Positions 3,553-64,000 of a stretch of 64,000 nucleotides of DNA are shown piece after piece. A program made the translations under genes and the position numbers. This stretch comes from Macrostomum lignano (taxonomy: Eukaryota): contig NIVC01001581.1 in NCBI GenBank assembly GCA_002269645.1, forward strand, positions 201,533 to 265,532, in the 5' to 3' direction. The number at the start of each line of letters is the position of its first letter. Position 1 is the stretch's first letter. The notes below the pieces were generated by a model. That model was not told the origin of the DNA. It ran no database searches and saw only the letters and a program-made list of their open reading frames with translations.

Positions 3553-4303
3553 ATGTCGGCCGAATTCCAAGTGGGTCTTCTTGGTTGCTTCAACGATTGC
3601 GGTAATAATCTTATTAAGTTAATTATTTTATAAGTATGATTTCTTAATCTCATTCAACTAAGCCATTCGGAAGAAGAAAGCTATACACACAGAATTTTTT
3701 GTTTAATTGCACACATTCGCGTAGATTAAGACTGGAGGCTACGATTGAGGTGGTTTAGCTGCAATGTACGCACTCGCGCTAATAGTTAATTGCTCGCGTA
3801 GATTTAGTCCAGGGCTGTGATTGAACTGGTTTAACTGCAATGTACGCACTCGCGCTAGTCAATTGTTCGCGTAGATTAAGACTGGGGGGACTGTGATTGA
3901 AGTGGTTTAGCTGCAATGTACGCACTCGCGCTAGTCAATTGTTCGCGTAAAGTTAGGTCCGAAAGCTGGTTTGAACTGTCATGTACACTCGCGCAGACCC
4001 GTTTTTTACTTGCTCATTATAGGCCTTTGCGTCCTGACCTACTTTGTTCCTTGCTATACTTTCGGCAAGAACGCGGAAGCCGTTGGGGAGAACTGCATCC
4101 TGTGCGGCTTCGGGATCTGCTGCGGTCTAGGCTTCATTCTGGGTCCGATCGTGCGCGGAAAAATTCGCGAGAAGCAAAATATTCCTGGCAGCTTCATCAC
4201 TGACTATTGCATCTGGTTTTTCTGTGCATTCTGCGCCTTGGTGCAGGAGGCTCAGGAGGTAAAAAGCTTCGGCGGATACGGCATGGCTGTCGAGAGAGAG
4301 TAA
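3553..4303 (+). CDS. PLAC8: PLAC8/cornifelin-family Cys-rich protein, copy 1
   Basis: Exons 3553-3601 (MSAEFQVGLLGCFNDC) and 4023-4303 with a phase-1 GT-AG intron. Translation continues GLCVLTYFVPCYTFGKNAEAVGE...RGKIREKQNIPGS...CAFCALVQEAQEV...ERE*, the PLAC8 pattern (GL-x-x-C-x-x-D-C ... PC ... CALxQE). Confidence 0.92.
3745..3995 (+). repeat. 76-bp tandem repeat (x3 plus a partial unit) in the PLAC8 copy 1 intron
   Basis: gcaatgtacgcactcgcgcta recurs at 3761, 3837 and 3913. Confidence 0.85.
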
Positions 4304-5119: not shown

Positions 5120-5446
5120 AACGGACTTGAACATAACTCTCTGCAAAATATAAGCTGTTTGGTATTATCGCGAGTACAATACTGCAATCCAGTTTATTCA
5201 GCCTCCACAGCATACTGCACCGTCAGCTTTGTGAAACTTCGAATATTTTGAAGCATTCTGCGTTACAATTAAAGTGTATGCCATCGTCGAAAATATATAA
5301 TTGATAAAAGATAATAATGATCGTTAAACAGACTGTTTGCTAGAAGTCACACGGCGAGACTAAAAGGGATGAAGGTCATTTTTATCAGTTGGTTACTGTA
5401 CCAATTTGATGTTTTTCAGTCCGAAAATATACAAAAAAAGTTTTCT

Positions 5447-6958
<1,512 letters not shown>

Positions 6959-7249
6959 TTAAGCCCAGATCTCTGGTTAAGATCTCCATGCCCAGTTCAA
7001 TGCTGGGTCAGGCCTGAGGCGGTGTGTGCCAGCTCGATGGCACACGCCACCTCTTCATTACAGAAAGAAAGCAAAATTCTAAGCGGGGGCTTTCAGAGGC
7101 GGCCTGCATGCAGAGTCGCAGGGTTTGAGTCGGGTGGGTAAGGGAGGGAGCTGACTGAGATGGTATAATATTCAAGCTCGGGTAGCCCAGGCGCTCAAAG
7201 CAGTTTAAAATTTCGACAGCCGTAAGTTTCTCGCATCTGTTTCGCAGAC

Positions 7250-8299
7250 ATGAATGTGCCGACAAAAGAGTTTCAGCACGGCCTGTGCGGCTGCCTGGAT
7301 GACTGCTGTAAGCTCGCACATTTACCTTTAGATTACAATTACAATTAGATGTATAGATTGATGTCTAGATACACAATTAGATATATACTCGTAGATTGGT
7401 GTCTAGACACACAGTTAGATATATAGATTGGTGTCTAGATACACAACTAGACAGATAGATGATCTAGATATATATCGGTGTCTAGACACACAATTAGATA
7501 TATAGATCCGTGTCTAGATACACAATTGGATATATATTGGTGTCTAGACACACAATTGGATATATAGATTGGTATCTAGATACACAATTGGATATATATC
7601 GGTGTCTAGACACACAATTGGATATATAGATTGATGTCTAGATACACAATTAGATATATCGATCGGTGTCTAGATGCACAATTAGATATATAGATTGGTG
7701 TCTAGATGCACAATTATATATATAGATTGGTGTCTAGATGCACAATTGGATATATAGATTGGTGTTTAGATGCACAATTAGATATATAGATTGGTGTCTA
7801 GATGCACAATTAGATATATAGATCGGTGTCTAGATGCACAATCGGATATATAGATTGGTGTCTAGATAGATCCCCAATTACGAGTACAGGTAAATGCCTG
7901 GCTTTATGCCTAGGTGAATGTTTAGACATAGAGATAAATGCATGTAGATTTCTATTAATAGCTACATGTAGATCTAAACACATCCCTGAAGCAACTGCAC
8001 CCCAATGCGGGCCCGCAGCCATCTGCATCATCACCTATTTCTGCCCCTGCTACACCTTCGGCCGCAACGCTGAGGCTGTTGGCAGCAGCTGCTGCCTCTG
8101 CGGCCTCGGCCTCATTCTCGGCTTCGGCTGCATCATCGGGCCGATGATTCGCGGAAAAATTCGCGAGCGTCAGGGCATCGATGGCAGCTTTTGTAAGGAC
8201 TGGTGCATCTGGCTCTTCTGCGGCTTCTGCGCTCTCGTGCAGGAGGCTCAGGAGGTCAAATCCTTCGCCATCAGGGCTCAAAGCATCGAGCGAGAATAA
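7250..8299 (+). CDS. PLAC8: PLAC8/cornifelin-family protein, copy 2
   Basis: Exons 7250-7307 (MNVPTKEFQHGLCGCLDDC) and 8019-8299, with the same phase-1 intron as copy 1. Translation continues SICIITYFCPCYTFGRNAEAVGS...CALVQEAQEVKSF...ERE*. Confidence 0.92.
7345..7870 (+). repeat. ~32-bp minisatellite (tatatagattggtgtctagatacacaattaga) in the PLAC8 copy 2 intron
   Basis: Visible tandem units. Confidence 0.9.
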
Positions 8300-9707: not shown

Positions 9708-10049
9708 GTGAAGTCATGTCACATGAATCATGTGAAAGGACTTTAATTTAAACTGCGTTTAGCACAGGAGAATGTAATTAAATCCAAAAACCTTTTGAAC
9801 CAAGAAAAACAGAAAATTTACCTGAGATAGCATCATAGCACCTTTGAACTACTTGACTGCATTAAACAACAAACGAGTGCAGTTGGCCATTTTATCCCCA
9901 AATCCTCTTTAATTAGTGTCGTCAAAACTCCATTGGCTGAGATGCGACACCAGGACGCCAGGGCAAGAGTCTATAAAATGAGCACTTTGATCAATCATGC
10001 ATTGTTGCCCTGCGAGCCAACTTCTGTAATGCGATATTCAAAAGTCATC

Positions 10050-10666
10050 ATGTCTACAGCTACAGATACAAGCTTAAACATTACCATAGCAACCAGTGAT
10101 CGAGTTTTAAGCGAAGTAACAGCGAATCTATTCATAGCCTGGCTAAGCGTAGCCATGGCGATTGGCGTCGTTAGCAACCTGATAGTCTTAGCAACGATTC
10201 TGACCTCCAAGAGCTCGTCAATTCGCACTGCCAGTGGATTTGCATTCGTGGCAAATCAGGCCATTGTAGACCTGCTGGTGCTGGTCATTGCTGCTCCCGA
10301 GATTGCAGTCTGCTTGTCGCGCGACTGTCTCTTCGAGCTGGGAGGCAGCGCTGGAATGCCAGGTTGCCAGGCGCTGGGATTCGCTGTGATGCAGTTGCTG
10401 GAGTGCAGCCTGTGCGGCACCGCTCTGCAGGCTGTCAGTCGCTACCTGCTGATTGCTGGCAGCGCTGGCGGCGGGCAGCGGACGTTCCTGAAAGTGTTCG
10501 GCAGTCGTCGGGCTCTGGCTGGTTGGCTGGCCGCGGTCTGGTTGCTGCCGGCTGGGCTTGCAGCGCCTCCCCTGCTGGGATTCGGGAGGTTCGATCTGCT
10601 TTGTGTCCTGTTTGTGTGGGGAGTTCTTAGCTGAACTACTGATGGGGAATCGCGTTGAGGGATAGC

Positions 10667-10749
<83 letters not shown>

Positions 10750-11757
10750 GAGACAGAGAGAGAGGTAAGGATAGTGGTAGGTGACGGACAGAGGTAGACA
10801 AGGATAGAGAGAGGTTGCGATAGTGGTAGGTGACAGAGATAGAGAAGGACAGAGAGAGGTTGGGATAGTGGTAGTGATGGAGGTAGACAAGGATAGAGAG
10901 AGAGAGGTAGGGATATTGGTAGGTGACGAACGGAGGTAGACAGGGATAGAGAGAGAGGTAGGGATAATGATAACTGATGGAGGTAGACAAGGATAGCGAG
11001 AGGTAGGTAGCTTGGATATTGGTAGTTGGTAGGTGACGGAGGTAGACAAGAATAGAGAGAGAGGTAGGGATAGTGGTAGGTGACGGAGGTAGACAAGGAT
11101 AGAGAGAGAGGTAGGGATAGTGGTAGGTGACGGAAGTAAACAAGGATAGAGAGAGAAAGGTAGGGATAGTGAGTTGACAGAGGTAGACAAGGATAGAGAG
11201 AGACGTAGAGATGTGGAGAGGCAGAGAATCGATAGAAAGAGAAGACCACGGTGAAGCAACTCCAGTAAAGAATATCTAACAAGCAGAACGCCGAAAATTC
11301 ATACAGGTACGCGTACAACTCAGCATTCGGCACCTGCTTGTTCGCCTGGGCAGACAAACTGAGCTACTATTACGTACTGGTATTCGGCTGTCTGGCCGTC
11401 GGTTTGCCCTCAATCGCGACTTCCCTCGGTAGCTATGTGGGGATTTTCCTCACGTTCCATCGGTCCAGAATGAGATCGATGGAAACTGGAAATAATGCTT
11501 CATCAAACGAATCCAGTCGTCTAGCCCGCAGTCTGTTCGTCACCTGGTGCTGCTTTCTAATTCTGTGGGGTCCGGTGATTCTGGTCACCCTGATTGGCGG
11601 TCTGGGGCAGCCTGCTGTACCTGTGCCTGTTACCCGAGCTCTGTTTCTCATGGCCCTCAGCAACAGCGCCGCTAATCCGGCTATTCTGCTGGCGATGAAC
11701 AGCAGACTGAGAGACGAATTCTTAGCGCTGATCGGCCGGTCAGGGACTGCACGATGA
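10050..11757 (+). CDS. Orphan rhodopsin-like (class A) GPCR, loosely melatonin-receptor-like, ~329 aa
   Basis: Exons 10050-10588 and 11307-11757 with a phase-2 intron join as ...LLGFGR|YAYNSAFGTCLF. Seven hydrophobic segments; TM1 SN, TM2 NQAIVD, TM3 Cys and SRY, TM4 W, ECL2 Cys, TM6 WGP, TM7 NSAANPAIL; N-glycosylation site NIT. The start codon choice is uncertain. Confidence 0.85.
10660..11215 (+). repeat. (GA)n plus compound purine-rich minisatellite filling the GPCR intron
   Basis: Visible repeats. Confidence 0.9.
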
Positions 11758-11934
11758 GCTATCTATTTATGATCTGTCCGTGATCTAAATTACAACGCTA
11801 GACGGAGACTGAGAGGGTAGAAAGAGAGAGAGGGAGAGAGGAAGATACTAGAGACAAAACAGATGCACAAGAGATGGGAGAGACTGGAGAGAAACAACAA
11901 AGAAATCTACGAGTGTCAGACTCTAAAGAGAGGC

Positions 11935-13545
11935 AAATTTGAGTAGAGACACAGTGAGATTTGAGTAGAGACACAGTGAGATTTGAGTAGAGACACAGTG
12001 AGATTTGAGTAGAGACACAGTGAGATTTGAGTAGAGACACAGTGAGACTTGAGTAGAGACACAGTGAGACTTGAGTAGAGAGACAGTGAGATTTGAGTAG
12101 AGACACAGTGAGATTTGAGTAGACAGTGAGACTTGAGTAGAGACACAGTGAGATTTGAGTAGAGACACAGTGAGACTTGAGTAGAGACACAGTGAGACTT
12201 GAGTAGAGAGACAGTGAGATTTGAGTAGAGACACAGTGAGATTTGAGTAGACAGTGAGACTTGAGTAGAGACACAGTGAGATTTGAGTAGAGACACAGTG
12301 AGACTTGAGTAGAGACACAGTGAGACTTGAGTAGAGAGACAGTGGATTTGAGTAGAGACACAGTGAGATTTGAGTAGACAGTGAGATTTGAGTAGAGACA
12401 CAGTGAGATTTGAGTAGAGATACAGTGAGATTTGAGTAGACAGTGAGATTTGAGTAGACAGTGAGATTTGAGTAGAGACACAGTGAGATTTGAGTAGAGA
12501 CACAGTGAGACTTGAGTAGAGACACAGTGAGACTTGAGTAGAGAGACAGTGAGATTTGAGTAGAGACACAGTGAGATTTGAGTAGACAGTGAGACTTGAG
12601 TAGAGACACAGTGAGATTTGAGTAGAGACACAGTGAGACTTGAGTAGAGACACAGTGAGACTTGAGTAGAGAGACAGTGAGATTTGAGTAGAGACACAGT
12701 GAGATTTGAGTAGACAGTGAGACTTGAGTAGAGACACAGTGAGATTTGAGTAGAGACACAGTGAGACTTGAGTAGAGACACAGTGAGACTTGAGTAGAGA
12801 GACAGTGGATTTGAGTAGAGACACAGTGAGATTTGAGTAGACAGTGAGATTTGAGTAGAGACACAGTGAGATTTGAGTAGAGATACAGTGAGATTTGAGT
12901 AGACAGTGAGATTTGAGTAGACAGTGAGATTTGAGTAGAGACACAGTGAGATTTGAGTAGAGACACAGTGAGATTTGAGTAGACAGTGAGATTTGAGTAG
13001 AGACACAGTGAGATTTGAGTAGAGATACAGTGAGATTTGAGTAGACAGTGAGATTTGAGTAGAGACACAGTGAGATTTGAGTAGAGACACAGTGAGACTT
13101 GAGTAGAGACACAGTGAGACTTGAGTAGAGAGACAGTGGATTTGAGTAGAGACACAGTGAGATTTGAGTAGACAGTGAGATTTGAGTAGAGACACAGTGA
13201 GATTTGAGTAGAGATACAGTGAGATTTGAGTAGACAGTGAGATTTGAGTAGAGACACAGTGAGATTTGAGTAGACAGTGAGATTTGAGTAGAGACACAGT
13301 GAGATTTGAGTAGAGACACAGTGAGATTTGAGTAGACAGTGAGATTTGAGTAGAGACACAGTGAGATTTGAGTAGACAGTGAGATTTGAGTAGAGACACA
13401 GTGAGATTTGAGTAGAGACACAGTGAGACTTGAGTAGAGACACAGTGAGACTTGAGTAGAGACACAGTGAGACTTGAGTAGAGACACAGTGAGACTTGAG
13501 TAGAGACTGCAGTGAGATTTGACTACAAAGTGAGATTTGAGTAAA
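11935..13545 (+). repeat. 22/18-bp satellite (gagtagagacacagtgagattt and variants) with higher-order structure
   Basis: About 1.6 kb array with recurring ordered variants (ctt/ttt, 18-bp deletion units, gtggattt marker). Confidence 0.95.
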
Positions 13546-14032
13546 GAAACAGTTAGAGTTGTCACAGACGCATAGAGAGAAGCTTAAAAGGTTGCATTAC
13601 CATATTTGAAAGAGCAGGTAAATTTGGGCTAACAATTTTGCGAGCGACACAACTTGTGTCAGACACACGAGCTAGGCTGGGTGAGGAATGATGGAAAAAG
13701 GAGTACGTGAGGCTGTATGGACTTAACGCTGCTCTTCATCTACACACAGACACATACACACACCATTGTTTGCAAATCAACATTTTTTAATCTTTTTCAC
13801 AACAAAAAACGGTTAAAATGTGCATCTAAGCTACTGAACTTTGACCAATGTGAGTAGGAACTTCCGTTTATTTTCGGCACTAATATGAAGCGTCAAGAGC
13901 AGTTGCATTCTAGCAATTGTGTCATGTCCTTTTGATGAAATTTGCTTGAATTGAGTAACTTTGTGGGATGTCTCGCTGTACGATCGGAACGTACAATAAC
14001 AGAAGGTAAGAAATTCTCATTGAGGACTTCTA

Positions 14033-16074: not shown

Positions 16075-18359
16075 TCAAAACTCGATGAAGTCCTCCGGCT
16101 GGTCAGCGTAGAACTCGTTGGCCTCGTCCTCGAATCCGGGCATGTCGATCCCGCTGGCGGCTCGCTCGCCGTTCAGAAGCATCTGTTTCATCATGCGGTC
16201 CATGCGGTCCATCTCGCGGTTCATCTCGCGGAAGACTCGTTCGGTGCCGGGCACGGTAGCGGAGGCGGCCATCACGCTAGACGGGGCCAGGTCCCACAGC
16301 TCGCCGCTGGTGTAGCACATCCTGCTGCCGTCCTTGCCGACATCGTCAGCTCGAATCCAGTACATCATGTAGAAGTTGCACATCTCGTCCTTCTGGGTAG
16401 CGCCGATGCTCACGTCCTTGTCGCCGGTGTTCTCCATGACGCACTTGGCCGCCAGCATGTCGCCAGGCCTGATGACGCCGCTGCCGTTCACTGGGTAGAA
16501 CATCTGGGGCATCTGCGGATTGGCCGAACCGATGAGGCTCCAGTGGCCGTCGCGAACGCGGTAGCCGCTCACCACGCGACCGTGGCTGTGGGTGTGCGTG
16601 CGGAAAGCGAACGGGTGCAGTGTGGTCTGGCCGTCGTAACTGCAGCTCGTCTCCATGTGCGTCACCGAGTGCGCCGGGATAACACCGTCAGTTAGTGAGA
16701 TGTGCACACCGCCGAGTTTCGGCGACGGAGTCGTCTGGTAGGTCATTTTCACGCCGGAGTTGTCCTTCAGGCTGGGGTTCTTGACGAAATCGGAGGCCTG
16801 CGTTTGGGGAGAGGTTGATTTTTTCTCATATTTGATGTCTCTCTTATCTCTGAATAGTGTTCCTCCACGATATTTGATGTGTCCCTCTACGATCTTGATG
16901 TGTCCCTATACGATCTTTGATGTGTCCCTCTACGATCTTGATGTGTCCCTATACGATCTTTGATGTGTCCCTCTACGATCTTGATGTGTCCCTATACGAT
17001 CTTTGATGTGTTCCTCTACGATCTTGATGTGTTTCTCTACGATATTGATGTGTTTCTCTACGATATTGATGTGTTTCTCTACGATATTTGATGTGTCCTT
17101 CTACGATCCTTGATGCGTCCCTCTACGATCTTTGATGCGTCCCTCTACGATCTTTGATGTGTCCCTCTACGATCTTGAGGTGTCCCTCTACGATCTTGGA
17201 TGTGTCCCTCTACATCCTTGATGCGTCCCTCTACGATCTTTGATGCGTCCCTATACGATCTTTGATGCGTCCCTCTACGATCTTTGATGCGTCCCTCTAC
17301 GATCTTTGATGCGTCCCTCTACGATCTTTGATGCGTCCCTCTACGATCTTTGATGCGTCCCTCTACGATCTTTGATGCGTCCCTCTACGATCTTGGATGT
17401 GTCCCTCTACGATCTTTGATGTGTCCCTCTACGATCTTGGATGTGTCCCTCTACATCCTTGATGCGTCCCTCTACGATCTTTGATGCGTCCCTCTACGAT
17501 CTTTGATGCGTCCCTCTACGATCTTTGATGCGTCCCTCTACGATCTTGGATGTGTCCCTCTACGATCTTGGATGTGTCCCTCTACGATCTTGATGTGTCC
17601 CTCTACGATCTTGATGTGTCCCTCTACGATCTTGGATGTGTCCCTCTACATCCTTGATGCGTCCCTCTACGATCTTTGATGCGTCCCTCTACGATCTTTG
17701 ATGCGTCCCTCTACGATCTTTGATGCGTCCCTCTACGATCTTGGATGTGTCCCTCTACGATCTTGATATTTCTCTACTCAGATTTTATCTTTTCTCTTTG
17801 ATGTTTGTCTTTACGATTTTCGACTTCTGCTTTCTAACGTCGAATAGCATTATAAATTCAAAAGACTTACCTTCTTATAGTGCACCTGCACGACTAGCCA
17901 GGGCAGGTCAAAGCCGGGCCCAACGCCAAAAGTCACACCGTCGGGCAGCTGCAAAGCCGGAGCGTCCATGGCGTAGGCGTAGATGATGCGGGTGTCGCTG
18001 GCGCACTGAGGCGCCTGCTTGTAGGTTTTATCACCGGCAGCTCCCTCCGACTTGGTGAGCATCTCGCCGCAGTTCCAGACTTTCTCGGTGGCCGAGCCGG
18101 GCTCCTTGCAGGCGGTCAGGATGATGTGGTGAGCGTGTCCGGACTGATGCTGCGGATTGAAGGCCCGGATGTAGCGGTTCTTGTCGAGTTTCACAGCCGT
18201 GCACAGGTAGGTGTCCTCCTGCTTGGGCGACACGCCCGGCATCAAAAGGTCCATGACGTTGCTGTCGCTGGCGGCCGGTGCCGAAGCCACCGAGGTCAGC
18301 ACCAGCGGCATCGCCAGCAGCGAGCACACGGCCGCAATGTTCACTAGTAGAGGCGTCAT
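16075..18359 (-). CDS. PHM: Peptidylglycine alpha-hydroxylating monooxygenase (monofunctional PHM), ~403 aa
   Basis: Exons 18359-17871 and 16797-16075 with a phase-0 intron. Signal peptide; CuH ligands GHAHHIIL and VQVHY; CuM ligands RTHTHSHG and DEMCNFY; PQMFYPV motif. The stop comes with no PAL or TM domain. A probable 5'UTR intron lies at 18528-18378. Confidence 0.95.
16860..17765 (+). repeat. ~22-bp minisatellite (ctacgatctttgatgcgtccct) in the PHM intron
   Basis: Visible tandem units. Confidence 0.95.
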
Positions 18360-19091
18360 GCGCAAGGTACTCGGCCTCTGTAATATGTTGGACCGTGTGT
18401 GTAATGTCAGATAAGTGCTGCAGTGTATAGAGTTTATACAGTCGTATTTATCTTTAACTGTAGCGTCTTATCAGCTGACTCTATAGACAGATATATTCCT
18501 ACATGCGCTCGCGAGATTAAAAGCTTACCTTCTAAAAACTTTACGTTCAAGTTCCGACTTCAGCAGTAGGAAACAATCGGAGCGGTAGGTGCGCGCTGTG
18601 CTCTCAGGCAGAAACCTATGCAGTCGGTTTCAGCTGAAAAATTTCGGAATTGAATTAAGCAGCGGATAAGCGAAGGGAAGGGGAATTCCTGGTGCAGCGG
18701 CTTTTGTGGATTTTGCGCTAGGCGGGGTTGGCTCGGGTGGAGAGGATGCTTGCACAGCGTAGGCCTCTTCGACAGTGAGGAGCTCCCAGTATTGAGAGAG
18801 AGGGGAGAAGCACTGAGTGAGCTCCTTCTCCTTTGCCTCCTGCATCCCAGCCCAGCTTCCCAAATCTCTCCCCAGCCTCAGATCGATAAATTTCTCTTAT
18901 CTCGGGGATGTGGGGGGAGAAGGGAGGAGCTGCAACTGCAGGGACTTCCGCCGACGGCGGGAGGGCAGGGACGGGGGCGATTGACACGAACGGCCTTAGT
19001 AGCATGGGAGAACTTCGCCTGATCGGGATGGGATGGGAAGACTTGGGAATTGAGGATGAGAATGGAATGAGGAAGGCTGTTCTCCTCTCGG

Positions 19092-20222: not shown

Positions 20223-23200
20223 TTACAGCTCGCTTTCCTGTAACTCAGGTGTTATCTCTTCATACCCGCCGCCAGCTTGCCTTTCATTTTCGGCTTCGTT
20301 TGAAGTTGCCGCCGCAGACGCCGCCGCCAACTCTTGATCGTTTGAAGTTGCCGCCGCAGACGCCGCCGCCAACTCTTGATCGTTTGAAGTTGCCGCCGCA
20401 GACGCCGCCGCCAACTCTTGATCGTTTGAAGTTGCCGCCGCAGACGCCGCCGCCAACTCTTGATCGTTTGAAGTTGCCGCCGCAGACGCCGCCGCCAACT
20501 CTTGATCGTTTGAAGTTGCCGCCGCAGACGCCGCCGCCAACTCTTGATCGTTTGAAGTTGCCGCCGCAGACGCCGCCGCCAACTCTTGATCGTTTGAAGT
20601 TGCCGCCGCCCGATGCTCCACAAGCCGTTTCGGCGGCAGCGGCGGCGCCCTGAACACTGGCGGCGACTCGCGACCGATCACGTTGTTGTAGGTGTCCTCA
20701 TTGCCGTTTCTAGGCAGCGACTGCACCTGATTTATTATGACAGTATCACTAGTAATCTTAGGTCCCGTTGGCAACAAATAAAGCTAAAATCTCTTCTATA
20801 AAAAAGTTTTTAACGCAAGAAGCCTTGTAAAATTACCATTGTTGTTTCTTAGAAATTAGAAAAGGCGTCAAGTTAGCTCGTATCTTGTCTAAGACATCCG
20901 CATCTCCATTGAGTCATGGCATCTCAGCAACTCCCCATTGAGCCAATTGGCATCTCAGCAACTCCCCATTGAGCCAATTGGCATCTCAGCAACTCCCCAT
21001 TGAGCCAATTGGCATCTCAGCAACTCCCCATTGAGCCAATTGGCATCTCAGCAACTCCCCATTGAGCCATGGCATCTCAGCAACCCCCCATTGAGCCAAC
21101 TGGCATCTCAGCAACTCCCCATTGAGCCAATTGGCATCTCAGCAACTCCCCATTGAGCCAATTGGCATCTCAGCAACTCCCCATTGAGCCAATTGGCATC
21201 TCAGCAACTCCCCATTGAGCCAATTGGCATCTCAGCAACTCACCATTGAGCCAATTGGCACCTCAGCAACTCCCCATTGAGCCATGGCATCTCAGCAACT
21301 CCCCATTGAGTCAATTGGCATCTCAGCAACTCCCCATTGAGCCATGGCATCTCAGCAACTCCCCATTGAGCCAATTGGCATCTCAGCAACTCCCCATTGA
21401 GTCAATTGGCATCTCAGCAACTGAACCTTAAAGCTCTCACAAGAATTTGGTTACTTGCTCAACTATAATTTCTAATTTGTTTTGGGCTAAGTGAGACACA
21501 GTCAAATCAAAACACAAACCTTGGCATATTGCGCCTCGGCGTCCTCATACGGACAATCTGCTCCAGAACCGATGTGCAAGCCGGCAACGGAGTAAGCGTA
21601 CGAGGCATTGTCAATGCTGATCGCTGACGAGTGCCCTGTTCGGTTCGATTGAGTCAGATGGTCAACGCTACGACCCTCGGCGGCTTGGTGACGACGGCTC
21701 CTGATCAACCGGTAGGCAAAGAAGACCACCACGGCAGCAATGGCCAGCAGCAGAGCGGGCACAAGCAGCCCGACCAGCAATCGGTTGTTATTGGCAGCTG
21801 ACAGTTCCGCTTCCGTCTGGTAGCGCGAGGTACAATTGACACCGGACCAGCCGATGGTGCACAGACAGGTGAAACTGCCGTGCAGGTTGCGGCATACCTG
21901 ACTGCCGTCGGTTTTGCAGGGTCTGTCTGTACTGGCTGAGCACTCGTCGATGTCCTGCTCACAACGGGGTCCGCTAAATCCTTTTGCGCACTGACAGGTG
22001 AAGTTACCTGAGAAAGAAATTGATGCTTGATCTGAGTGGTCCAAGAAGTTTTATCTAGGTACTTTTTCCGCCACTGTTACAACACTTTGCAGGTGATTTT
22101 GAGGCTACATGTTTCATGTTGTTGCATCGACTTGCGGTAGGTTTCTGAGGCTACATGTTGTTCATTGACTTGCTGGAGTTTTCTGAGGCTACATGTTGTT
22201 CATTGACTTGCTGGAGTTTTCTGAGGCTACATGTTGTTCATTGACTTGCTGGAGTTTTCTGAGGCTACATGTTGTTCATTCACTTGCTGGAGTTTTCTGA
22301 GGCTTCTTGTTTTGTGTTGGTGCATCGACTTGCAGTAGGTTTCTGAGGCTACATGTTTCATGTTGCTGCATCGACTTGCGGGAGGCTTCTGAGGCCACAT
22401 GGTGAATGATTTTTGTACAATTCTGAGCCTATATGCTACACTACCTTCGTATGTACATGCATTTATTTAAAATCTAGTTTTCATCAGGTTTGCATTAGCC
22501 TACCTGGAGGCGAGTTCACACAGGTGCCACCATTGAAGCAAGCGTTGGTGAGTTTGCATTCGTCAACATCCTCAGTGCAGTTTTTCCCCGTCCATCCAGC
22601 CAAGCAGTGGCAGCTGTAGGTGCCAAACTGGTTGCGACAGGCGCTGGCATGTTGGCAAACTGGCGGCGAGGCCGCGCACTCATCGATGTCCGACTCGCAG
22701 AAGGTGCCGTTGAACCCGGCGGAGCAGCTGCAACCTCCGGCGCCTGTGCCGGGAATGCAGGTACCGTTGTTGCGACACGGAGTATCCGGCGAGTCGCAGG
22801 CTGACAGTTTTGTCTCGCATGTTGGGCCTAATTTTAGGCGAAGTATTAGAAAATCAGCTCAAATGCCATTGTGCTACTATCAGTAATATGCATCAAAGTT
22901 GCTCACCTCCCCACAGACCGACGCATTCGCAAGCGAATCCCGAGTCCAAGTTGGCGCACGTGCCGCTATTTTTGCAGGGAGTTCGGCTGGCACAGTAGGT
23001 CTGACGGCACGAGCTGACTGGATCGTAGGCTGCAGAATCATTAAGTTGTAGTAATGATATTTTATGTAATTTGTGCGTGCTCACAGATTCTAGTGTGGTG
23101 ATAAAGCCCCTGGTGCTAAAGCCAATGGTGCTAAAGTACATGGTGCAAAAGCCCTTGGTGATAAAGCCCCTGGTGCTAAAACCTCTGGTGATAAAGCTCC

Positions 23201-29351: not shown

Positions 29352-50458
<21,107 letters not shown>

Positions 50459-52160: not shown

Positions 52161-53775
52161 TCAACAATCGTTAGTTGGCTGAAAGTTGGCTACCTTCCAG
52201 TACATGACGCCGAAACACAGGGCGGTCATGACGCAGGATGCCGTGCCGACGACTCGTTCAACAACGCTAGCGGCCACGTGCCACTGGACTGCGCGCAGCT
52301 GGTTCAGCCAGTCGATCCGTCCAGAGTCTCGCAGAAACTGACGCGACGCTTGCAAAATCTGGCGCTCTTTAGCTTCGAGCAGATCACGCGGCTGCTCGCT
52401 AGACGAAGCTGCCTGACGCAGAAGTTCGACTTCATCCTCGGAGTCTAACTCGTTGATTTTGGAGCGCTCTACGTAGCGACGGTAATTGGCTAGGCTGGTG
52501 AGTTCTCGCTCTGACAGGACGGGGGATGAGAGAATCTGTTTGTCCAGCCAATCAGCAAACAGCTGGGGTAGAGAAAGTGGCTGTTGGTTCAGCCAGCCAA
52601 GATAATCAGCAATTCAGCATGGGTTAGAGATACTCTGTTGAGCCAGCCAATCAGCGAATAGCTGGGGTGAGAGAGAGCCTTTGTTTCGCTAGCCAATCAG
52701 CGTCCAGCTTTAGACAGAAGGAGACTCTGTTGGGCGACAAGCACAAGTATAAATATAATTAAATACTCAAAATAGCGTACCTCCGCACGCAATGATAATG
52801 CGTTTAAGCAGTCCCGACGGCCGATGCCGATAGCTGACCAGTTTCAGCGACATCACCGACGAAGCCGTTGCTACGCTGGCGTTGACCATCCCCATAGCAA
52901 CCAGCGAGCTTAGTATAGCAACAGAATCCGATGTAGTTGGCAACTTGTTAACCAACAGAGTAGAATAGATAGAGAATGTAGTCATCATGCTCATGCAGAA
53001 CGTGACCTTCTCCCCGGAGCTGAACGGCACCCAGTAAGAGAAAAAGGTCACGCAGATGAAGACCAGAGTTGGCAGGGCAACATTTACCAAATAGAAGACA
53101 GAGTGCCTGCGCATGCAGATGTACACGATCACTTCGCTGAACGCGTTCGCTAGCAGAGGGTAGCTGGTGAGGTTTCTGCCCAGCCAGACTCGAGTGACAT
53201 TCCATTCTCCGTGCTGGATGCTGAACTCTTTCAGCACCGGCTTCATGCTGGGATGGACCCGGAGGTCCAGCTGGGACATGTCGTAGGTCCAGCTGGCGAA
53301 TTTCAGGCTGCAGAGCTGCCTGGGATAGAATATAATAGAATAGAACACAATAGAATAGAATAAAATAGAATAGGAAAAACTAAAATAGGAATCTACCTAT
53401 CAAAAGGGAACAGAGTCAGATCCACAGCGCAGTGGCTCTTTGAAGTGACGGCGGGCATCCATTTAATCGTACCGTTGCTGCTGATTGACACCGAAATATC
53501 GGTGGGAAAATACCCCACATAGTCTCCGGCTGTGTTCCGCTCCTGCCAATGGCCAGGTTGAATTGCTGGCTGTTAACTGACTGACTGACTGACTGACTGA
53601 CTGACTGACTGACTGACTGACTGACTGACTGACTGACTGACTGACTGACTGACTGACTGACTGACTGACTGACTGACTGACTGACTGACTGACTGACTGA
53701 CTGACTGACTGACTGACTGACTGACTGACTGACTGACTGACTGACTGACTGACTGACTGACTGACTGACTGACTG

Positions 53776-53818
<43 letters not shown>

Positions 53819-54249
53819 ATCTAACTAACTGACTCACTAACTAACTAACTCACATCAAAGCCAAGAATCTGTGTCAGCGATGCAGCAAAGTACACTATGA
53901 CAGGCACAGACGCATTGTACACGGGCCTCGAGTCCGGGGTGCAGGACTCTCTGATCATGTCGAACACCGTGTGCTCATAGTTCATGTGGCCGCCGCTGCC
54001 GCCTCCGCTAGCCGTGAGGTTCACCTCGTTAGTTGCAGCTTCATCGTCCCAGCATCCGTTGGCTGATGACGAAGCGCCGAAAATTTGGCGTCTCTGCTGT
54101 TCCAGCAGCCGCTGCCTCATTAGCAGTCTCTGCTGCTGCTGTCGCTGCAGCTGCCTGAGTCGATGATGCTGAGGGCTTGCCCAGCCTCCGTGCTGCATCA
54201 ACACGCATGCTATGAGCAGCAGCAGAAGCGGCAACTGTTTTGTTTCCAT
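52161..54249 (-). CDS. Divergent nicotinic-acetylcholine-receptor-like Cys-loop channel subunit (non-alpha), ~476 aa as assembled
   Basis: Exons 54249-53854, 53542-53397, 53319-52781 and 52510-52161 (phases 0, 2, 1). Signal peptide; RPVYNAS; Cys-loop CAVDLTLFPFDRQLC; loop B FASWTYD; EWNV; no vicinal CC in loop C; M1 YLVNVALPT; SGEK M2; M3; M4 QWHVAASVVERVV. Confidence 0.9.
53575..53850 (+). repeat. Compound (CTGA)n/(CTTA)n/(CTAA)n microsatellite filling intron 1 of the channel gene
   Basis: Visible. Confidence 0.95.
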
Positions 54250-57615: not shown

Positions 57616-57767
57616 TTCTTTGCTTTATTCTCTGAATCAGGAGCTTTGCGATGTTTGGCTGGACAAAAAATTGAATGTCTCTTTGATTTATGCTGAGCAC
57701 TGAGCACTGCTGCAGCTGTTCTGTGCACCAATCATGTTGTCATCGGGAAATTTAATTGCAGACGGTT

Positions 57768-58310
<543 letters not shown>

Positions 58311-58749
58311 GGGAAACATGTAGACAGTAGTTTTTAGCAAGAAATTCGATAAATTTCAACATGCTTAATTTACTTTTCTTGACTACTTCTGCAAAGCTAC
58401 TATAAGTAGAGTGTTCAGCGCCAGACCGAAGAGAACGTTTATCGAATTTGTTTTTCTGCTTAGCAACTGTGTTTTAATGGGACTCTCGCTCACGCCTGTT
58501 GCGCTTTTACGAGTACTGTGCCATTATTGCAGCTGTTGTGCAGTCCTAATTGCAGAAGTATTTTGGCTTTATAGGATGGAGGATTCAATCAGCGGGGATT
58601 TTAAAAGAGTCGCAGCTGCTAAGCTTGTGCAGCTAATACACGGATTAGATTAGAAAGCCGGAAGCATGCGTTGAATAGTTGCCCGATTTAGTTAGAAACT
58701 GTCTCTTGTTTTTTGTGTAAAAACGGACTTGATGAAAAATTTACAACTA

Positions 58750-59347: not shown

Positions 59348-60606
59348 TTAGGGTGAGCCAAAAGTTTCCGGAATTTGAACAATTTAAAACTATAACAAAT
59401 AGTGTCAAGAACAAACAGTTTATAGCGATGTGATGTAGTTGCCATTCAAGGCCCTGACCCTCTCCCATCTTGCTGGCAATGCCTCAATCCCCTCCCTCCA
59501 GAAGCTCGCAGGCTTTGAATCAATCCATTTCTGCACTGCCTGCTCCACATGTTGCTTGTTGGCGAACCGCTGTCCATCACAAAAGCTCTGGAGAGACCTG
59601 AACACATGATAGTCGCATGGCGAGAGGTCTGGTGAGTATGGTGGGTGGGGCAAAACACTGTAGCCCAGGCTTGCCAGCTTGGCCTGGGTGAGTCTTGCTT
59701 TGTGAAGCCGCGCAATGTCGAAGAGGAGCACCTTGTCGCGGTGCCCCGGGCACACGGATCGCAGCAAACGGGCGATCTGCTCCAGTTCGCTGCAGATCAC
59801 CTCCGCGTTCACAGCCATGCCATGCGGGATGACCTCCCAGAAAACAGGGCCAGACGAGCAGAACCAGAGAGAGAGCAGCTCCTTGCCGCAGTGGGCGTTC
59901 CGCATTGGGCAGCTGGGTGGTTCTTCAGAAGCATCGACCCAGACGGCTGATGTGCTTGGGTTCTCATAGCAGACCCACTTCTCGTCTTGAGCGATTATCG
60001 ACTTGAGAAAGTTTGGCGAACCGGCATAGCGAAGATTCGAAGTTGCCACATCCACCCTGGCTCTCAGCTGCTGAGGTGTCAGCTCATGGGGCACCAGAGT
60101 TGGCTTCTTCGGCACCTTGTCCGCAGCATGCAGGCTCCGCCGGACCGTGCCACAGGACACCCCAGTAGCGGCTGACAACGCTGTAGTCCGGAGTGTCCTC
60201 AAGGGCTTGGAGAACGGCATCGCCATCAGCAGCAGGGGGTCGGCCTGACCTCGGCTTGTCCTTCAGCTCATAGTTCTCCTCAGCAAAGCGAGAGAACCAC
60301 TCGTACACCGACGACTTTGAGGGTGCATGTGGGCCCATCAGCTGCAACAACTCGCGATGTGCCTCGGCTGCTTTGCGTCCCGCATGAAAGTGGCTGAGCA
60401 GAATTGCTCGCCATTCAGTTCTTGGCAGTTCCATTGGATGCGTTTGCTGGCTTAAGTAGGCAGGGTCTGGGAAACTGAGCGATGTTAAGCTAAAGAGTGA
60501 TGATAAGGCTGGCCAACAGCATAGTAGATGGTTGCTGCTTTTAAGCTTTTCCATAGACAAAAATTAACTAAAAGTTCGATTCTAAAAAACTTTTGGCTCA
60601 CCCTAA
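59348..60606 (-). mobile_element. Mariner (DD34D) transposon, full length 1259 bp
   Basis: TA|ttagggtgagccaaaagttt ... aaacttttggctcaccctaa|TA, i.e. TIRs with a TA TSD; the transposase lies inside. Confidence 0.95.
59420..60434 (-). pseudogene. Mariner transposase with a single frameshift (~60200)
   Basis: ATG 60434 gives MELPRTEWRAILL...VYEWFSRF...LKDKPRSGRP (HTH). A second frame gives LVPHELT, AQDEKW, LFDIARLH and HPPYSPDLSPCDYHVF, with 34 residues between the 2nd and 3rd Asp. Confidence 0.9.
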
Positions 60607-61319
60607 TATCTTTGGAGTGGCATTATCTGGGAGCGCCAGGTTGGAGGCGCCACCTGAGGGCAGTTATTAGTTTCCAATCCAATTGAAGAGACTATCTAAA
60701 CTAGAAGTCCATGACTGTCACACATTCAATGCAACTACAATACCGTAGTTGCATGCGGGCGGAGGCCATGAGAGGAGCGATATGAGAGATCGAGGAAGTG
60801 AAATCGGCTTGGCCTGCAGTTCTTTCAAATCCTCAATAATCATATTTGGCGGGCCAATAGTTAAAGAAACCCAAAGCAGCAATGCTTTGCGAGAAGAAGA
60901 GAGTATTAAACACTTAGAAGTTTATCAGCCTATGAAGCGGTTGGTTAATTTCTTTTAACACCCCGGGCAATATCTTTTTCTCTGTGTCCCAGCCATTGCT
61001 GCGGTTTGGCTTTTTGTCATAATTTGTGAAAGTGTTTATTGCCATTTTTTTACGACCAAGCCTGGCAGACGGCCGCTAAGTTAGTGCCTTCTTTTTTACT
61101 CCACTGAGCCGCTCCGCGACTGCAGGCGTGTTGGCATTTACTCAATAAGTTTCGCTTAAGCTCGGTTTATTTTCCCTTTTAAGAGGCCGACAGTTTCAAT
61201 AGTTATAAGCTCACAGAGCCTCCACAATTATATTTTATTTGCAAGTCGCTTTCTCCTGCGAAGCTTGGCGTAATTTTGTAGACTGAAAGCATTTGCATAT
61301 CTCAAAACTGAATTTACTA

Positions 61320-61855
<536 letters not shown>

Positions 61856-63169
61856 GTGACTAGCATAACAGAATTATTTATAATTATTGAAATTGCTCAT
61901 CCGAGCGACAACTCAAACGAATGACCCGTGGGAAAATCGACATTTTATTGGCCAGTTTCGATGCGCTATGAATTCGATTTCAGCTCGGGTCATTAATAAG
62001 CCACCGATTAGACATTGACATCGGCCTGGCCCTAATTTATGAGTGTCACTGCAGCTCACTGGCAGTAGCAGAGACTATGACATCTAATACCCGAAATGAC
62101 AAATCATTTTATTCAATTGAGTCAGACTTTAAAAGATAGTCCTTATTGTTTTGTTCTGTTTTCTGTTGCTTGTTTGTTGTTGTTTGTTGTTTGTTGTCTG
62201 TTGTTTGCTATATGCTCTTTGTTCTTTGTCGTTTGCAACGACCACTGAAGTCACTTAAGTAGTCCTTGTTCGTTTGTTGTTTGTCGTTTGTTGTATGTTG
62301 TTTGTTGTTTGTTTGTTTATTGTTGTTTGTTGTCTGTTGTTTGTTGTCTGTTGTTTGTTCCTTCTTGTCTGTTGTTTGTTCCTTGTTGTCTGTTGTTTGC
62401 TTTATGTTATTTGTTATTTGTTTGTTATTTGTTGTTTGTTGTTTGTCGCTGCTTGCCTGCTTTGGTTACTGTTGAAAACTGGCTATCATTGGTTTCTCAT
62501 CCCCATCAGTTCCAAGCCGAACTCCCCAATTCGTCTTAATTATAGCTTGGCCCACTCCAAGGATAGCTTGCAGTTAATGCTTAGCACTGATTGGATTCTT
62601 ATATTTTGGTGCAGGCGGCTTGACCCGTCGCGACTCATAGTCTTTGCATTAAATTAGTCTCAAAGCTTCTGACAGTCAGGGGGCAGCAGCCGAGAGTCAG
62701 GGGGGATATGGAAGAGGCCACTCAGCGATAAAAACTCTATCAAAACCGACTCAGAAAAACACAGGGCTTGAGCTCTCAAGATTGGATGACGCTGCTATTG
62801 CTCGTAAGGAGAAGCTGGGCAGCCGGGATGGCGGGGGATTCTGGGCAATCAACTCCATCATTTCTCTTATCCGGTTTCATTTCGCCTCGGAGGCCCTGAC
62901 CTCCATTATGAAGATATTAATGCAATTAAGCTTGGGCTCGACTTTAGCCCTGCGATATCGGAGACCCGCAGTTCTTGTCCATCCTTGATGTTTGGCATTG
63001 GAAAACCCCCAAGGCTTGATGTACATGCCGGACATTTAGAAAGTCGGGCCGCTGTGTGAGCCCGTCTGTCTCTACACTACAAAATATTAGGGGCTTGCTG
63101 AGTTTGCAGGGATGCAGGGTTTGAGAAATGAAGAGTTGATTTGAGGAATGAAAGGCTTGTTGAAGGGAG

Positions 63170-63870
63170 GAAGGTTTGGAAGAATGAAGGGTTGGAAGAA
63201 TGAAGGGTTGGAAGAATGAAGGGTTGGAAGAATGAAGGGTTGGAAGAACGAAGGGTTGGAAGAATGAAGGGATGGAAGAATGAAGGGTTGGAAGAATGAA
63301 GGGATGGAAGAATGAAGGGTTGGAAGAATGAAGGATTGGAAGAATGAAGGGTTGAAAGAATGAAGGGTTGAAGAAATGCAGGGTTGGAAGAATGAAAGGT
63401 TGGAGAAATGCAGGGTTGGAAGAATGAAGGGTTGGAAGAATGAAGGGTTGGAAGAATGAAGGGTTGGAAGAATGAAGGGTTGGAAGAATGAAGGGTTGGA
63501 AGAATGAAGGGTTGAAAGAATGAAAGGTTGGAGAAATGCAGGGTTGGAAGAATGAAGGGTTGGAAGAATGAAGGGTTGGAGAAATGCAGGGTTGGAAGAA
63601 TGAAGGGTTGGAAGAATGAAGGGTTGGAAGAATGCAGGTTGGAAGAATGAAAGGTTGGAGAAATGCAGGTTGGAAGAATGAAGGATTGGAAGAATGAAGG
63701 GTTGAAAGAATGAAGGGTTGGAGAAATGCAGGGTTGGAAGAATGAAGGGTTGGAAGAATGAAGGGTTGGAAATGCAGGGTTGGAAGAATGAAAGGTTGGA
63801 GAAATGCAGGGTTGGAAGAATGAAGGGTTGGAAGAATGAAAGGTTGGAGAAATGCAGGGTTGGAAGAATA
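63170..63870 (+). repeat. 16-bp minisatellite (gaagaatgaagggttg)
   Basis: Visible. Confidence 0.92.
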
Positions 63871-64000
63871 TGAAGTTGGAGAATTGCATGGAAATGAAGA
63901 TTTGGATGAATAAAAATATACTAGCGCTGATATTTGACGAAATAAAAGTAAAGCAATTAAAAAGCCTCGAGTGTTTCGCAAATGCTACCCAGTTGTTACA

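Follow-up and report, generated by a model that had tools for sequence, protein, structure and literature searches.

Can a Cys-loop receptor subunit naturally carry polar residues in the rings that form the hydrophobic gate of its pore, and is the gene that poses this question still the gene of a working channel? The gene lies in four exons on the minus strand (54249-52161) of a 64,000-nucleotide stretch of the Macrostomum lignano genome (assembly GCA_002269645.1, contig NIVC01001581.1, positions 201,533 to 265,532), referred to here as the window. A first-pass annotation of this DNA had proposed that the product may form or modify a leaky or non-desensitising cation channel. Judged from its sequence, the product is a very divergent Cys-loop subunit of the cation-selective nicotinic/5-HT3 branch, with threonine at the 9' position of its second transmembrane helix (M2). 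The explanation that we favour, at somewhat short of an even chance, is that of a lineage-specific non-alpha accessory subunit whose polar gate evolved under selection and of which this copy has recently been crippled. What is seen in the window is probably a freshly disabled gene, and not a working leaky channel.

The pore helix and its 9' residue

M2 and its flanks, GEKVTFCMSMMTTFSIYSTLLVNKLPTTSD, are encoded at 52926-53015 on the minus strand, from Gly -2' through Asp. The M2 letters quoted in the first-pass annotation are exact, and its placement of the helix at 52940-53030 is off by only about 15 nt. When the M1-M2-M3 region is aligned by HMMER with human nicotinic acetylcholine receptor (nAChR) subunit alpha4 (5kxi_A, E 1.7e-19), there is no gap in M2 (segment GEKVTFCMSMMTTFSIYSTLLVNKLPTTS), and because the cytoplasmic GEK motif and the outer P-x-T-S are equally spaced in alpha4, the register of the helix is fixed. 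The annotation's gap-free alignment to alpha7 also proves sound: the alpha7 string that it used is the M2 of P0056 and P0103, alpha-7-like proteins of Puntigrus and Thamnophis, both of which align without gaps.

On this register, Glu -1' (53012-53010) and Lys 0' of the GEK motif are followed by Thr 2' (53003-53001), Ser 6' (52991-52989), Thr 9' (52982-52980), Ile 13' (52970-52968), Thr 16' (52961-52959) and Asn 20' (52949-52947), all on the minus strand; Met 7', Met 8', Thr 10' and Tyr 14' accompany Thr 9' in addition to the residues at 13', 16' and 20'. The two threonines at 9' and 16', read as such in the annotation, are both encoded by ACT and Asn 20' by AAC. Since each ACT codon needs two changes to reach any leucine codon, a single base-call error does not account for either threonine. 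The stretch SSGEKVT, with Glu at -1' and no proline insertion at -2', is that of the cation branch, and the top sequence and structure matches are all cationic receptors. The pore is of the cation type, and in this subunit the hydrophobic gate has polar residues at two of its three rings, with Thr at 9' in place of the hydrophobic residue of a canonical gate.

To assess the rarity of these residues, exon 3 was compared exhaustively by HMMER with 1.84 billion cluster representatives, and 3957 matches were obtained. The closest of these has an E-value of 4e-28, identity to any relative is at most 34%, and none of the representatives is more than 35% identical to the channel gene. Among 172 M2 segments taken from the best 150 of the 3957 matches, position 9' is Leu in 153, Val in nine, Ile in five, Met in three and Phe in two, and is polar in none. 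The cation-selective Glu -1', which the annotation had described as kept, is found in 165 segments. Position 16' is Leu in 98, Met in 19, Gln in 17 and Thr in 16, while position 20' is Glu in 95, Asp in 46 and Asn in ten, with other residues making up the remainder at both sites. The annotation had singled out departures at 9', 16' and 20' alike; the survey upholds the first as rare (0/172) and finds the other two ordinary (16/172 and 10/172). Thr 9' is, within this sample, the sole real outlier in M2, with Thr 16' and Asn 20' lying inside family variation and being common enough among invertebrate subunits; as remarkable features in their own right the latter were rejected, each occurring in 6-9% of relatives.

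Other searches were less productive. A word-indexed homology search of exon 3 against 5.8 billion clusters yielded 89 candidates, none of them significant; an exact look-up of the exon 1 and exon 3 open reading frames (ORFs) in public assemblies found nothing on record; and a metagenome scan for exon 3 relatives gave 141 pattern matches, of which none was confirmed. Literature searches found no described natural subunit with a polar 9' residue, which is absence of evidence only, and we know of no characterised example.

The leucine ring at 9' is the textbook hydrophobic gate of these receptors, and a polar residue at this position is a standard laboratory route to receptors that are hypersensitive, slow to desensitise or spontaneously open. 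Less hydrophobic 9' residues generally stabilise the open state, increasing agonist sensitivity and unliganded opening and slowing deactivation and desensitisation (PMC4485021). Desensitisation is strongly reduced in alpha7 L247T, an L9'T mutant, and in L9'T and L9'S mutants as a group it is much reduced and agonist sensitivity is higher (PMC3281115, PMC4548482; rule in PMC4485021). These engineered receptors, which include the L9' series in muscle and alpha4beta2 as well as alpha7 L247T, have the same residue at the same pore position as the gene described here. They are, however, single changes in canonical subunits, whereas Thr 9' in the window is natural and occurs with other M2 changes, an alanine in the M2-M3 loop and a truncated extracellular domain (ECD). 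Because of these many further differences, the mutant phenotype is not simply transferable. By analogy with mutants of other receptors, a leaky or non-desensitising channel is plausible. Labarca et al. (1995) reportedly found that L9' substitutions in a heteropentamer contribute roughly equally each. In such a heteropentamer, each Thr 9' would weaken the 9'/13'/16' hydrophobic girdle that keeps the closed pore dry, and a weaker girdle would be expected, as in the L9'S/T mutants, to give higher agonist sensitivity, slower deactivation and desensitisation, and more unliganded opening.

Gene structure and the missing extracellular block

The gene was assembled by reading the frames of the minus strand, followed by a script check, which confirmed a coding sequence of 1458 nt (485 codons) with zero internal stops and GT-AG boundaries at all three introns. 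Exon 1 (53854-54249, 396 nt) starts with an ATG at 54249, encodes a signal peptide, a Gln/Arg-rich extension of about 65 residues, the alpha1 helix and the beta1 strand (RPVYNASVPVIVYFAASLTQILGFD), and ends at the donor GTGAGT. Intron 1 (53570-53853, 284 bp) consists almost entirely of a tetranucleotide array and has the acceptor ttaacag. Exon 2 (53397-53569, 173 nt; PAIQPGHWQERNTAGDYVGYFPTDISVSISSNGTIKWMPAVTSKSHCAVDLTLFPFD) encodes beta5-beta6 and the first half of the Cys-loop, including its first Cys. The second Cys is encoded by exon 3 (52781-53319, 539 nt), together with loop B (KFASWTYD), loop C (YPLL), M1, M2 and M3; the reverse-complement translation of 52779-53321 is one open exon containing RRHSVFYLVNVALPTLVFICVTFFSYWVPFSSGEKVTFCMSMMTTFSIYSTLLVNKLPTTSDSVAIL, and its open frame starts around the second Cys (RQLCSLKFASWTYD) and continues through loop C and the three helices. 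Exon 4 (52161-52510, 350 nt including the TGA stop) follows an acceptor with a good pyrimidine tract (ctcatcccccgtcctgtcag) and codes for the MA helix and M4 after a short intracellular loop (WHVAASVVERVVGTASCVMTALCFGVMYW). All of these features are on the minus strand, and a tblastn search found no second pLGIC (for pentameric ligand-gated ion channel) gene or paralogue in the window, in which the channel gene is single-copy.

Repeats are also found elsewhere in the gene. Intron 2 is mostly (ATAGA)n (53325-53388), and intron 3 (52511-52780, minus) holds four to five copies of the unit CTGATTGGCTGG, which resembles an inverted CCAAT box and is a candidate minisatellite or regulatory cluster. 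The Gln/Arg-rich stretch of about 65 residues at the mature N-terminus (54060-54180, minus; RLRQLQRQQQQRLLMRQRLLEQQRRQ) is encoded by CAG/CTG-type repeats. It is modelled by AlphaFold2 (AF2) as a long helix with a predicted local distance difference test score (pLDDT) of about 85-92. Such a stretch is unusual for a Cys-loop subunit.

Both family domains are recognised by Pfam, PF02931 (Neur_chan_LBD) with E 4.4e-24 (85.5 bits, cut-off 26) and PF02932 (Neur_chan_memb) with E 2.7e-8 (34.8 bits, cut-off 28.1). The best matches among solved structures are human nAChR alpha4, alpha7 and beta2 and 5-HT3A (E 1.7e-19 to 1e-15, HMMER against the PDB). The Cys-loop itself, C-AVDLTLFPFDRQL-C, has 13 residues between its cysteines, contains the FPFD motif and crosses the exon 2/3 junction. 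An AF2 model built with a multiple sequence alignment predicts the four helices M1-M4 at residues 264-286, 293-315, 322-352 and 412-478 (pLDDT about 85-94, and about 90 for the transmembrane domain as a whole), and its best Foldseek matches are alpha7, alpha4beta2 and muscle nAChR and 5-HT3A. What this model supports is a canonical transmembrane domain, the foldability of the shortened ECD being beyond it; AlphaFold run on the single sequence was uninformative (pLDDT 41.5). Of the agonist-binding elements, the loop B Trp is kept, loop D is absent and loop A is degraded, while in loop C, at the place where 81% of relatives have the vicinal cysteines of Y-x-C-C, the sequence is YPLL. Because this Cys pair is absent, the gene encodes a non-alpha subunit.

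In these respects the gene is akin to divergent accessory subunits and to those nAChR-like genes of invertebrates that are orphans or belong to expanded families. With the accessory neuronal nAChR subunits (vertebrate alpha5 and beta3, and divergent invertebrate non-alpha subunits) it shares GEK, Glu -1', the Cys-loop, the loop B Trp, four transmembrane helices and the lack of a full agonist site of its own. Beta3 and alpha5 have Val, not Leu, at 9'; in our survey 19 of the 172 relatives' segments have Val, Ile, Met or Phe there, and the window gene differs from them in having a polar Thr. It is like beta subunits in lacking the Cys pair, but unlike accessory subunits in missing about 42 conserved ECD columns and in being at most 34% identical to known subunits. 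Alpo4 of Alvinella and the expanded lophotrochozoan nAChR families are also highly divergent; their pores are of the cation type, and residues of the pore or of the binding site are non-canonical. Introns are few in orphan and expanded invertebrate genes of this kind, and expression is often low or absent (PMC10338036; PMC6896357). The oddity of Alpo4 is the opposite of the one described here, being a tighter, more hydrophobic 16' Met gate, and the window gene stands alone in its 64 kb, unlike the tandem arrays of the expanded families.

A lesion that the first-pass annotation missed lies between exons 1 and 2, where 42 well-occupied alignment columns of the ECD, or about 40-50 codons, are missing. 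In relatives these columns read xxTxxxWxxx, DxxLxWNxxxYGGxxxxxxPxxxIWxPD and IxLY, and they comprise the beta1-beta2 coupling loop, beta2 with loop D, the WxDxxLxW segment, beta3, and most of loop A including WxPD. The ten-strand beta-sandwich of a complete ECD is not present, and the Pfam LBD profile is matched only at positions 103-215 of 216. Exon 1 ends in LTQILGFD, at the ancient VDE|KNQ phase-0 intron position of vertebrate nAChR gene structure, and the start of exon 2, PAIQPGHWQERNTAGDY, corresponds to WxPDxxLYNxADGxF of relatives. No coding stretch for the missing motifs (W.D..L.W, WxPD, KNQ) was found in six frames of the whole window.

In place of this block stands intron 1, an (AGTN)n/(ACTG)n array nearly throughout (68.8 copies, 97% match, about 275 bp), which touches coding sequence at both edges; the GTGAGT donor runs directly into it. 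The ttaacag acceptor has no pyrimidine tract, and 30 nt further downstream another acceptor, ttggcag, is also in frame, so that splicing across the array is in frame by either. At the junction (residues 137-143) the AF2 pLDDT falls below 50. The array units themselves supply GT and AG, in GTAAGT-like and CAG-like form. This intron may be a microsatellite that has been used as an intron, or that has replaced one after coding loss. Since about 42 conserved ECD columns are absent and an array stands in their place, a normally folded ligand-gated subunit is doubtful, and the functional proposal of the first-pass annotation is weakened both by this missing block and by the ordinary nature of Thr 16' and Asn 20'.

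Constraint and competing explanations

The conservation of the protein speaks against decay as the origin of the polar pore. When the channel protein was compared with the consensus of 38 relatives (39 sequences in the alignment), it was found to be identical at 24 of the 27 columns that are at least 90% conserved (89%), at 53% of those conserved at 70-90%, at 33% of those at 50-70%, at 21% of those at 30-50% and at 10% of those below 30%. Such graded retention is the signature of long-term purifying selection on the pLGIC fold, and it suggests that the polar pore was once functional. In another alignment, columns at least 80% conserved show 14 mismatches out of 45, against a median of 3 and more than in any complete relative examined. 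Where a conserved site has changed, the exchange is mostly conservative (F>Y, L>V, T>S, L>M, V>I, D>E). The exceptions are L9'T, the Cys pair of loop C, Ala for Pro in the M2-M3 loop, and the loop A motif.

The integrity of the coding sequence sets a limit on how long the gene could have drifted. In simulated neutral decay of the coding sequence, with indels included, the ORF remained intact in 16% of cases at 0.01 substitutions per site, in 2.8% at 0.02 and in none at 0.05. Because the 1458-nt ORF and four GT-AG exons are intact, neutral drift has amounted to no more than about 0.02 substitutions per site; the gene, if dead, died recently, and the peculiarities of M2 therefore predate its death. 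There is no frameshift, stop or lost splice site, and the ECD block, lost in frame, is the sole lesion. GC content is 0.67 at third codon positions (GC3) against 0.43 at second positions (GC2), and adjacent coding exons have the same excess. The first-pass annotation had named relaxed selection in a dead gene as the finding that would undo its reading of M2; given the intact ORF and the 89% retention at the best-conserved columns, such an origin is unlikely.

These data are the basis for our preference, stated at the outset, for a lineage-specific accessory subunit. The polar pore would have arisen under purifying selection, as a working feature of an accessory (structural) subunit, and an intact version, being non-alpha and without binding elements of its own, would lower the gating barrier of the receptor that it joined. 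The ECD block would then have been lost by a recent microsatellite-associated deletion, fixed or allelic, leaving a subunit that would be unable to complete the beta-sandwich or to couple ligand binding to the pore. Several points weigh against this account. The M2-M3 loop Pro is Ala, and gating may consequently differ in unpredictable ways; an exception to the polar-9' rule exists in ELIC, where L9'A speeds up deactivation (PMC4485021). The deletion may be real, allelic or an assembly error, and in-frame splicing over the array together with an otherwise flawless ORF are equally what a gene still in use would show. Finally, the cluster, public-assembly and metagenome searches retrieved no orthologue, paralogue, transcript or second haplotype.

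The most serious alternative, which we consider unlikely, is that the gene is complete in the animal and that one or more exons were lost by assembly collapse between two (ACTG)n arrays, or are lacking only in the sequenced haplotype. The product would then be the full-length non-alpha accessory subunit envisaged by the first-pass annotation, with Thr 9' and Thr 16' easing opening, slowing desensitisation or making the channel leaky. Four intact exons with consensus splice sites and the graded retention of conserved sites are in keeping with this, as are the exon 1 donor at the ancient VDE|KNQ phase-0 position and the fact that, with the ttggcag acceptor, the missing block forms a clean phase-0 to phase-0 exon unit between repeats. 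Also in its favour are the standing of Thr 9' as a genuine outlier and the marked reduction of desensitisation in alpha7 L247T (PMC3281115, PMC4548482). Collapse is nonetheless difficult to reconcile with the kilobase-long pure arrays and lack of Ns in the window, which point to a long-read assembly of the kind that normally spans a 275-bp array; this argument is not decisive. No trace of the missing coding sequence was found within the 64 kb, nor was an orthologue found in the cluster, assembly or metagenome searches.

A second alternative, to which we assign a distinctly low probability, takes the truncation as real and tolerated, with a product that co-assembles through its remaining ECD and transmembrane domain with full-length subunits, acting as a modulatory or dominant-negative subunit and adding a polar ring position to the pore. 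The model for such a product is human dupalpha7 (CHRFAM7A), a negative regulator of alpha7 that co-assembles with it although the N-terminal 146 residues of the ECD are absent (PMC8196834, PMC8998457, PMC11176066). Like dupalpha7, the window gene encodes a nicotinic subunit with the part from Cys-loop to M4 intact and the N-terminal half of the ligand-binding domain missing, and one of its PDB matches (9qto_A) is a chain named CHRNA7 exons 5-10 plus FAM7A. In-frame splicing over the array by either of the two acceptors and the high confidence with which the transmembrane domain is modelled would also be compatible with a tolerated truncation. The two cases differ in that dupalpha7 is the product of partial duplication and fusion, has nothing N-terminal of exon 5 and retains Leu 9', whereas in the window gene the signal peptide, alpha1 and beta1 are still encoded and a microsatellite intron takes the place of the beta2-beta3/loop A block alone. 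With beta1 kept and beta2-beta3 gone, the result is an internal hole in the inner sheet and not an N-terminal truncation, and the lack of a pyrimidine tract at the intron 1 acceptor further counts against this reading.

It is also conceivable, at a still lower level of probability, that this member of the Cys-loop family is no longer a ligand-gated channel of the plasma membrane, but a scaffold, or else a channel-like protein, intracellular or non-neuronal, whose pore is permanently hydrated. Both faces lack agonist-binding elements (loop C has no Cys pair, loop D is gone and loop A is degraded), the Gln/Arg-rich N-terminal extension is unusual, and orphan invertebrate subunits that answer no classical transmitter, such as Alpo4, exist (PMC10338036); the pore, on the other hand, keeps the cation-channel hallmarks GEK, Thr 2' and Ser 6'. 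An old pseudogene, in which neutral decay produced Thr 9', Thr 16', Asn 20' and the remaining peculiarities, would account for the excess of mismatches at conserved columns, the lowest consensus identity among the 39 sequences of the alignment described above, the ECD loss with its absent WxPD, the M2-M3 alanine and the lack of any relative above 35% identity, but it is highly improbable and was rejected on the unbroken ORF with intact splice sites, which neutral decay would rarely or never have spared, and on the graded conservation with its mostly conservative replacements, the GC3 excess likewise standing against it.

Surroundings of the gene and implications

The remainder of the window contains several unrelated genes. 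On the plus strand are two PLAC8-family ORFs in tandem (3935-4300 and 7814-8296; Pfam PF04749, E 1e-18 and 3e-17) and a rhodopsin-type G-protein-coupled receptor in two ORFs (9831-10631 and 11269-11754), of which the second matches positions 135-259 of the 7tm_1 profile; the two are split by a low-complexity, repeat-encoded region near the position of the third intracellular loop. A PHM-like gene on the minus strand carries the N and C domains of copper type II ascorbate-dependent monooxygenases (16078-16905 and 17853-18467). It looks monofunctional, the C-terminal ORF stopping soon after the PHM domain, and its best relatives, which include arthropod and fish proteins, are about 50% identical. 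Also on the minus strand (21505-22858), calcium-binding EGF repeat exons with a weak Delta/Jagged-type EGF match precede a transmembrane segment, and the gene looks like a Notch-ligand-like or EGF-repeat membrane protein. Immunoglobulin I-set exons of titin/obscurin-like type lie at 39052-42476 (plus), flanking a 707-residue open frame rich in Ala, Ser, Thr and Lys (39836-41956), and a mariner/Tc1-type transposase remnant (Pfam Transposase_1 and DDE_3) lies at 59423-60563 (minus). An Rfam scan of the window gave no match. Pure micro- or minisatellite arrays of kilobase scale occupy 5396-7007, 11801-13596, 57697-58355, 61231-61896 and 62947-64000, and the window contains no Ns; so exceptionally high a repeat load without Ns would suit an animal genome that is very rich in repeats and was assembled from long reads.

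The practical significance of the gene is moderate and uncertain, the ECD being crippled in the sole copy seen. That a natural subunit with polar 9' and 16' residues is expressed and assembles, whether full-length or in the manner of dupalpha7, to give a standing leak or a non-desensitising receptor is in our view rather unlikely; if true, the classic L9'T gain-of-function mutation would have its first counterpart in nature. The microsatellite-associated loss of the ECD block would be a clear case either of repeat-driven gene erosion or of a truncated modulator made by a repeat, in a repeat-rich genome. More generally, a subunit whose Thr 9' evolved under selection would show how nature tunes or abandons the gate of these receptors, and would provide a ready-made natural 'reporter' subunit.

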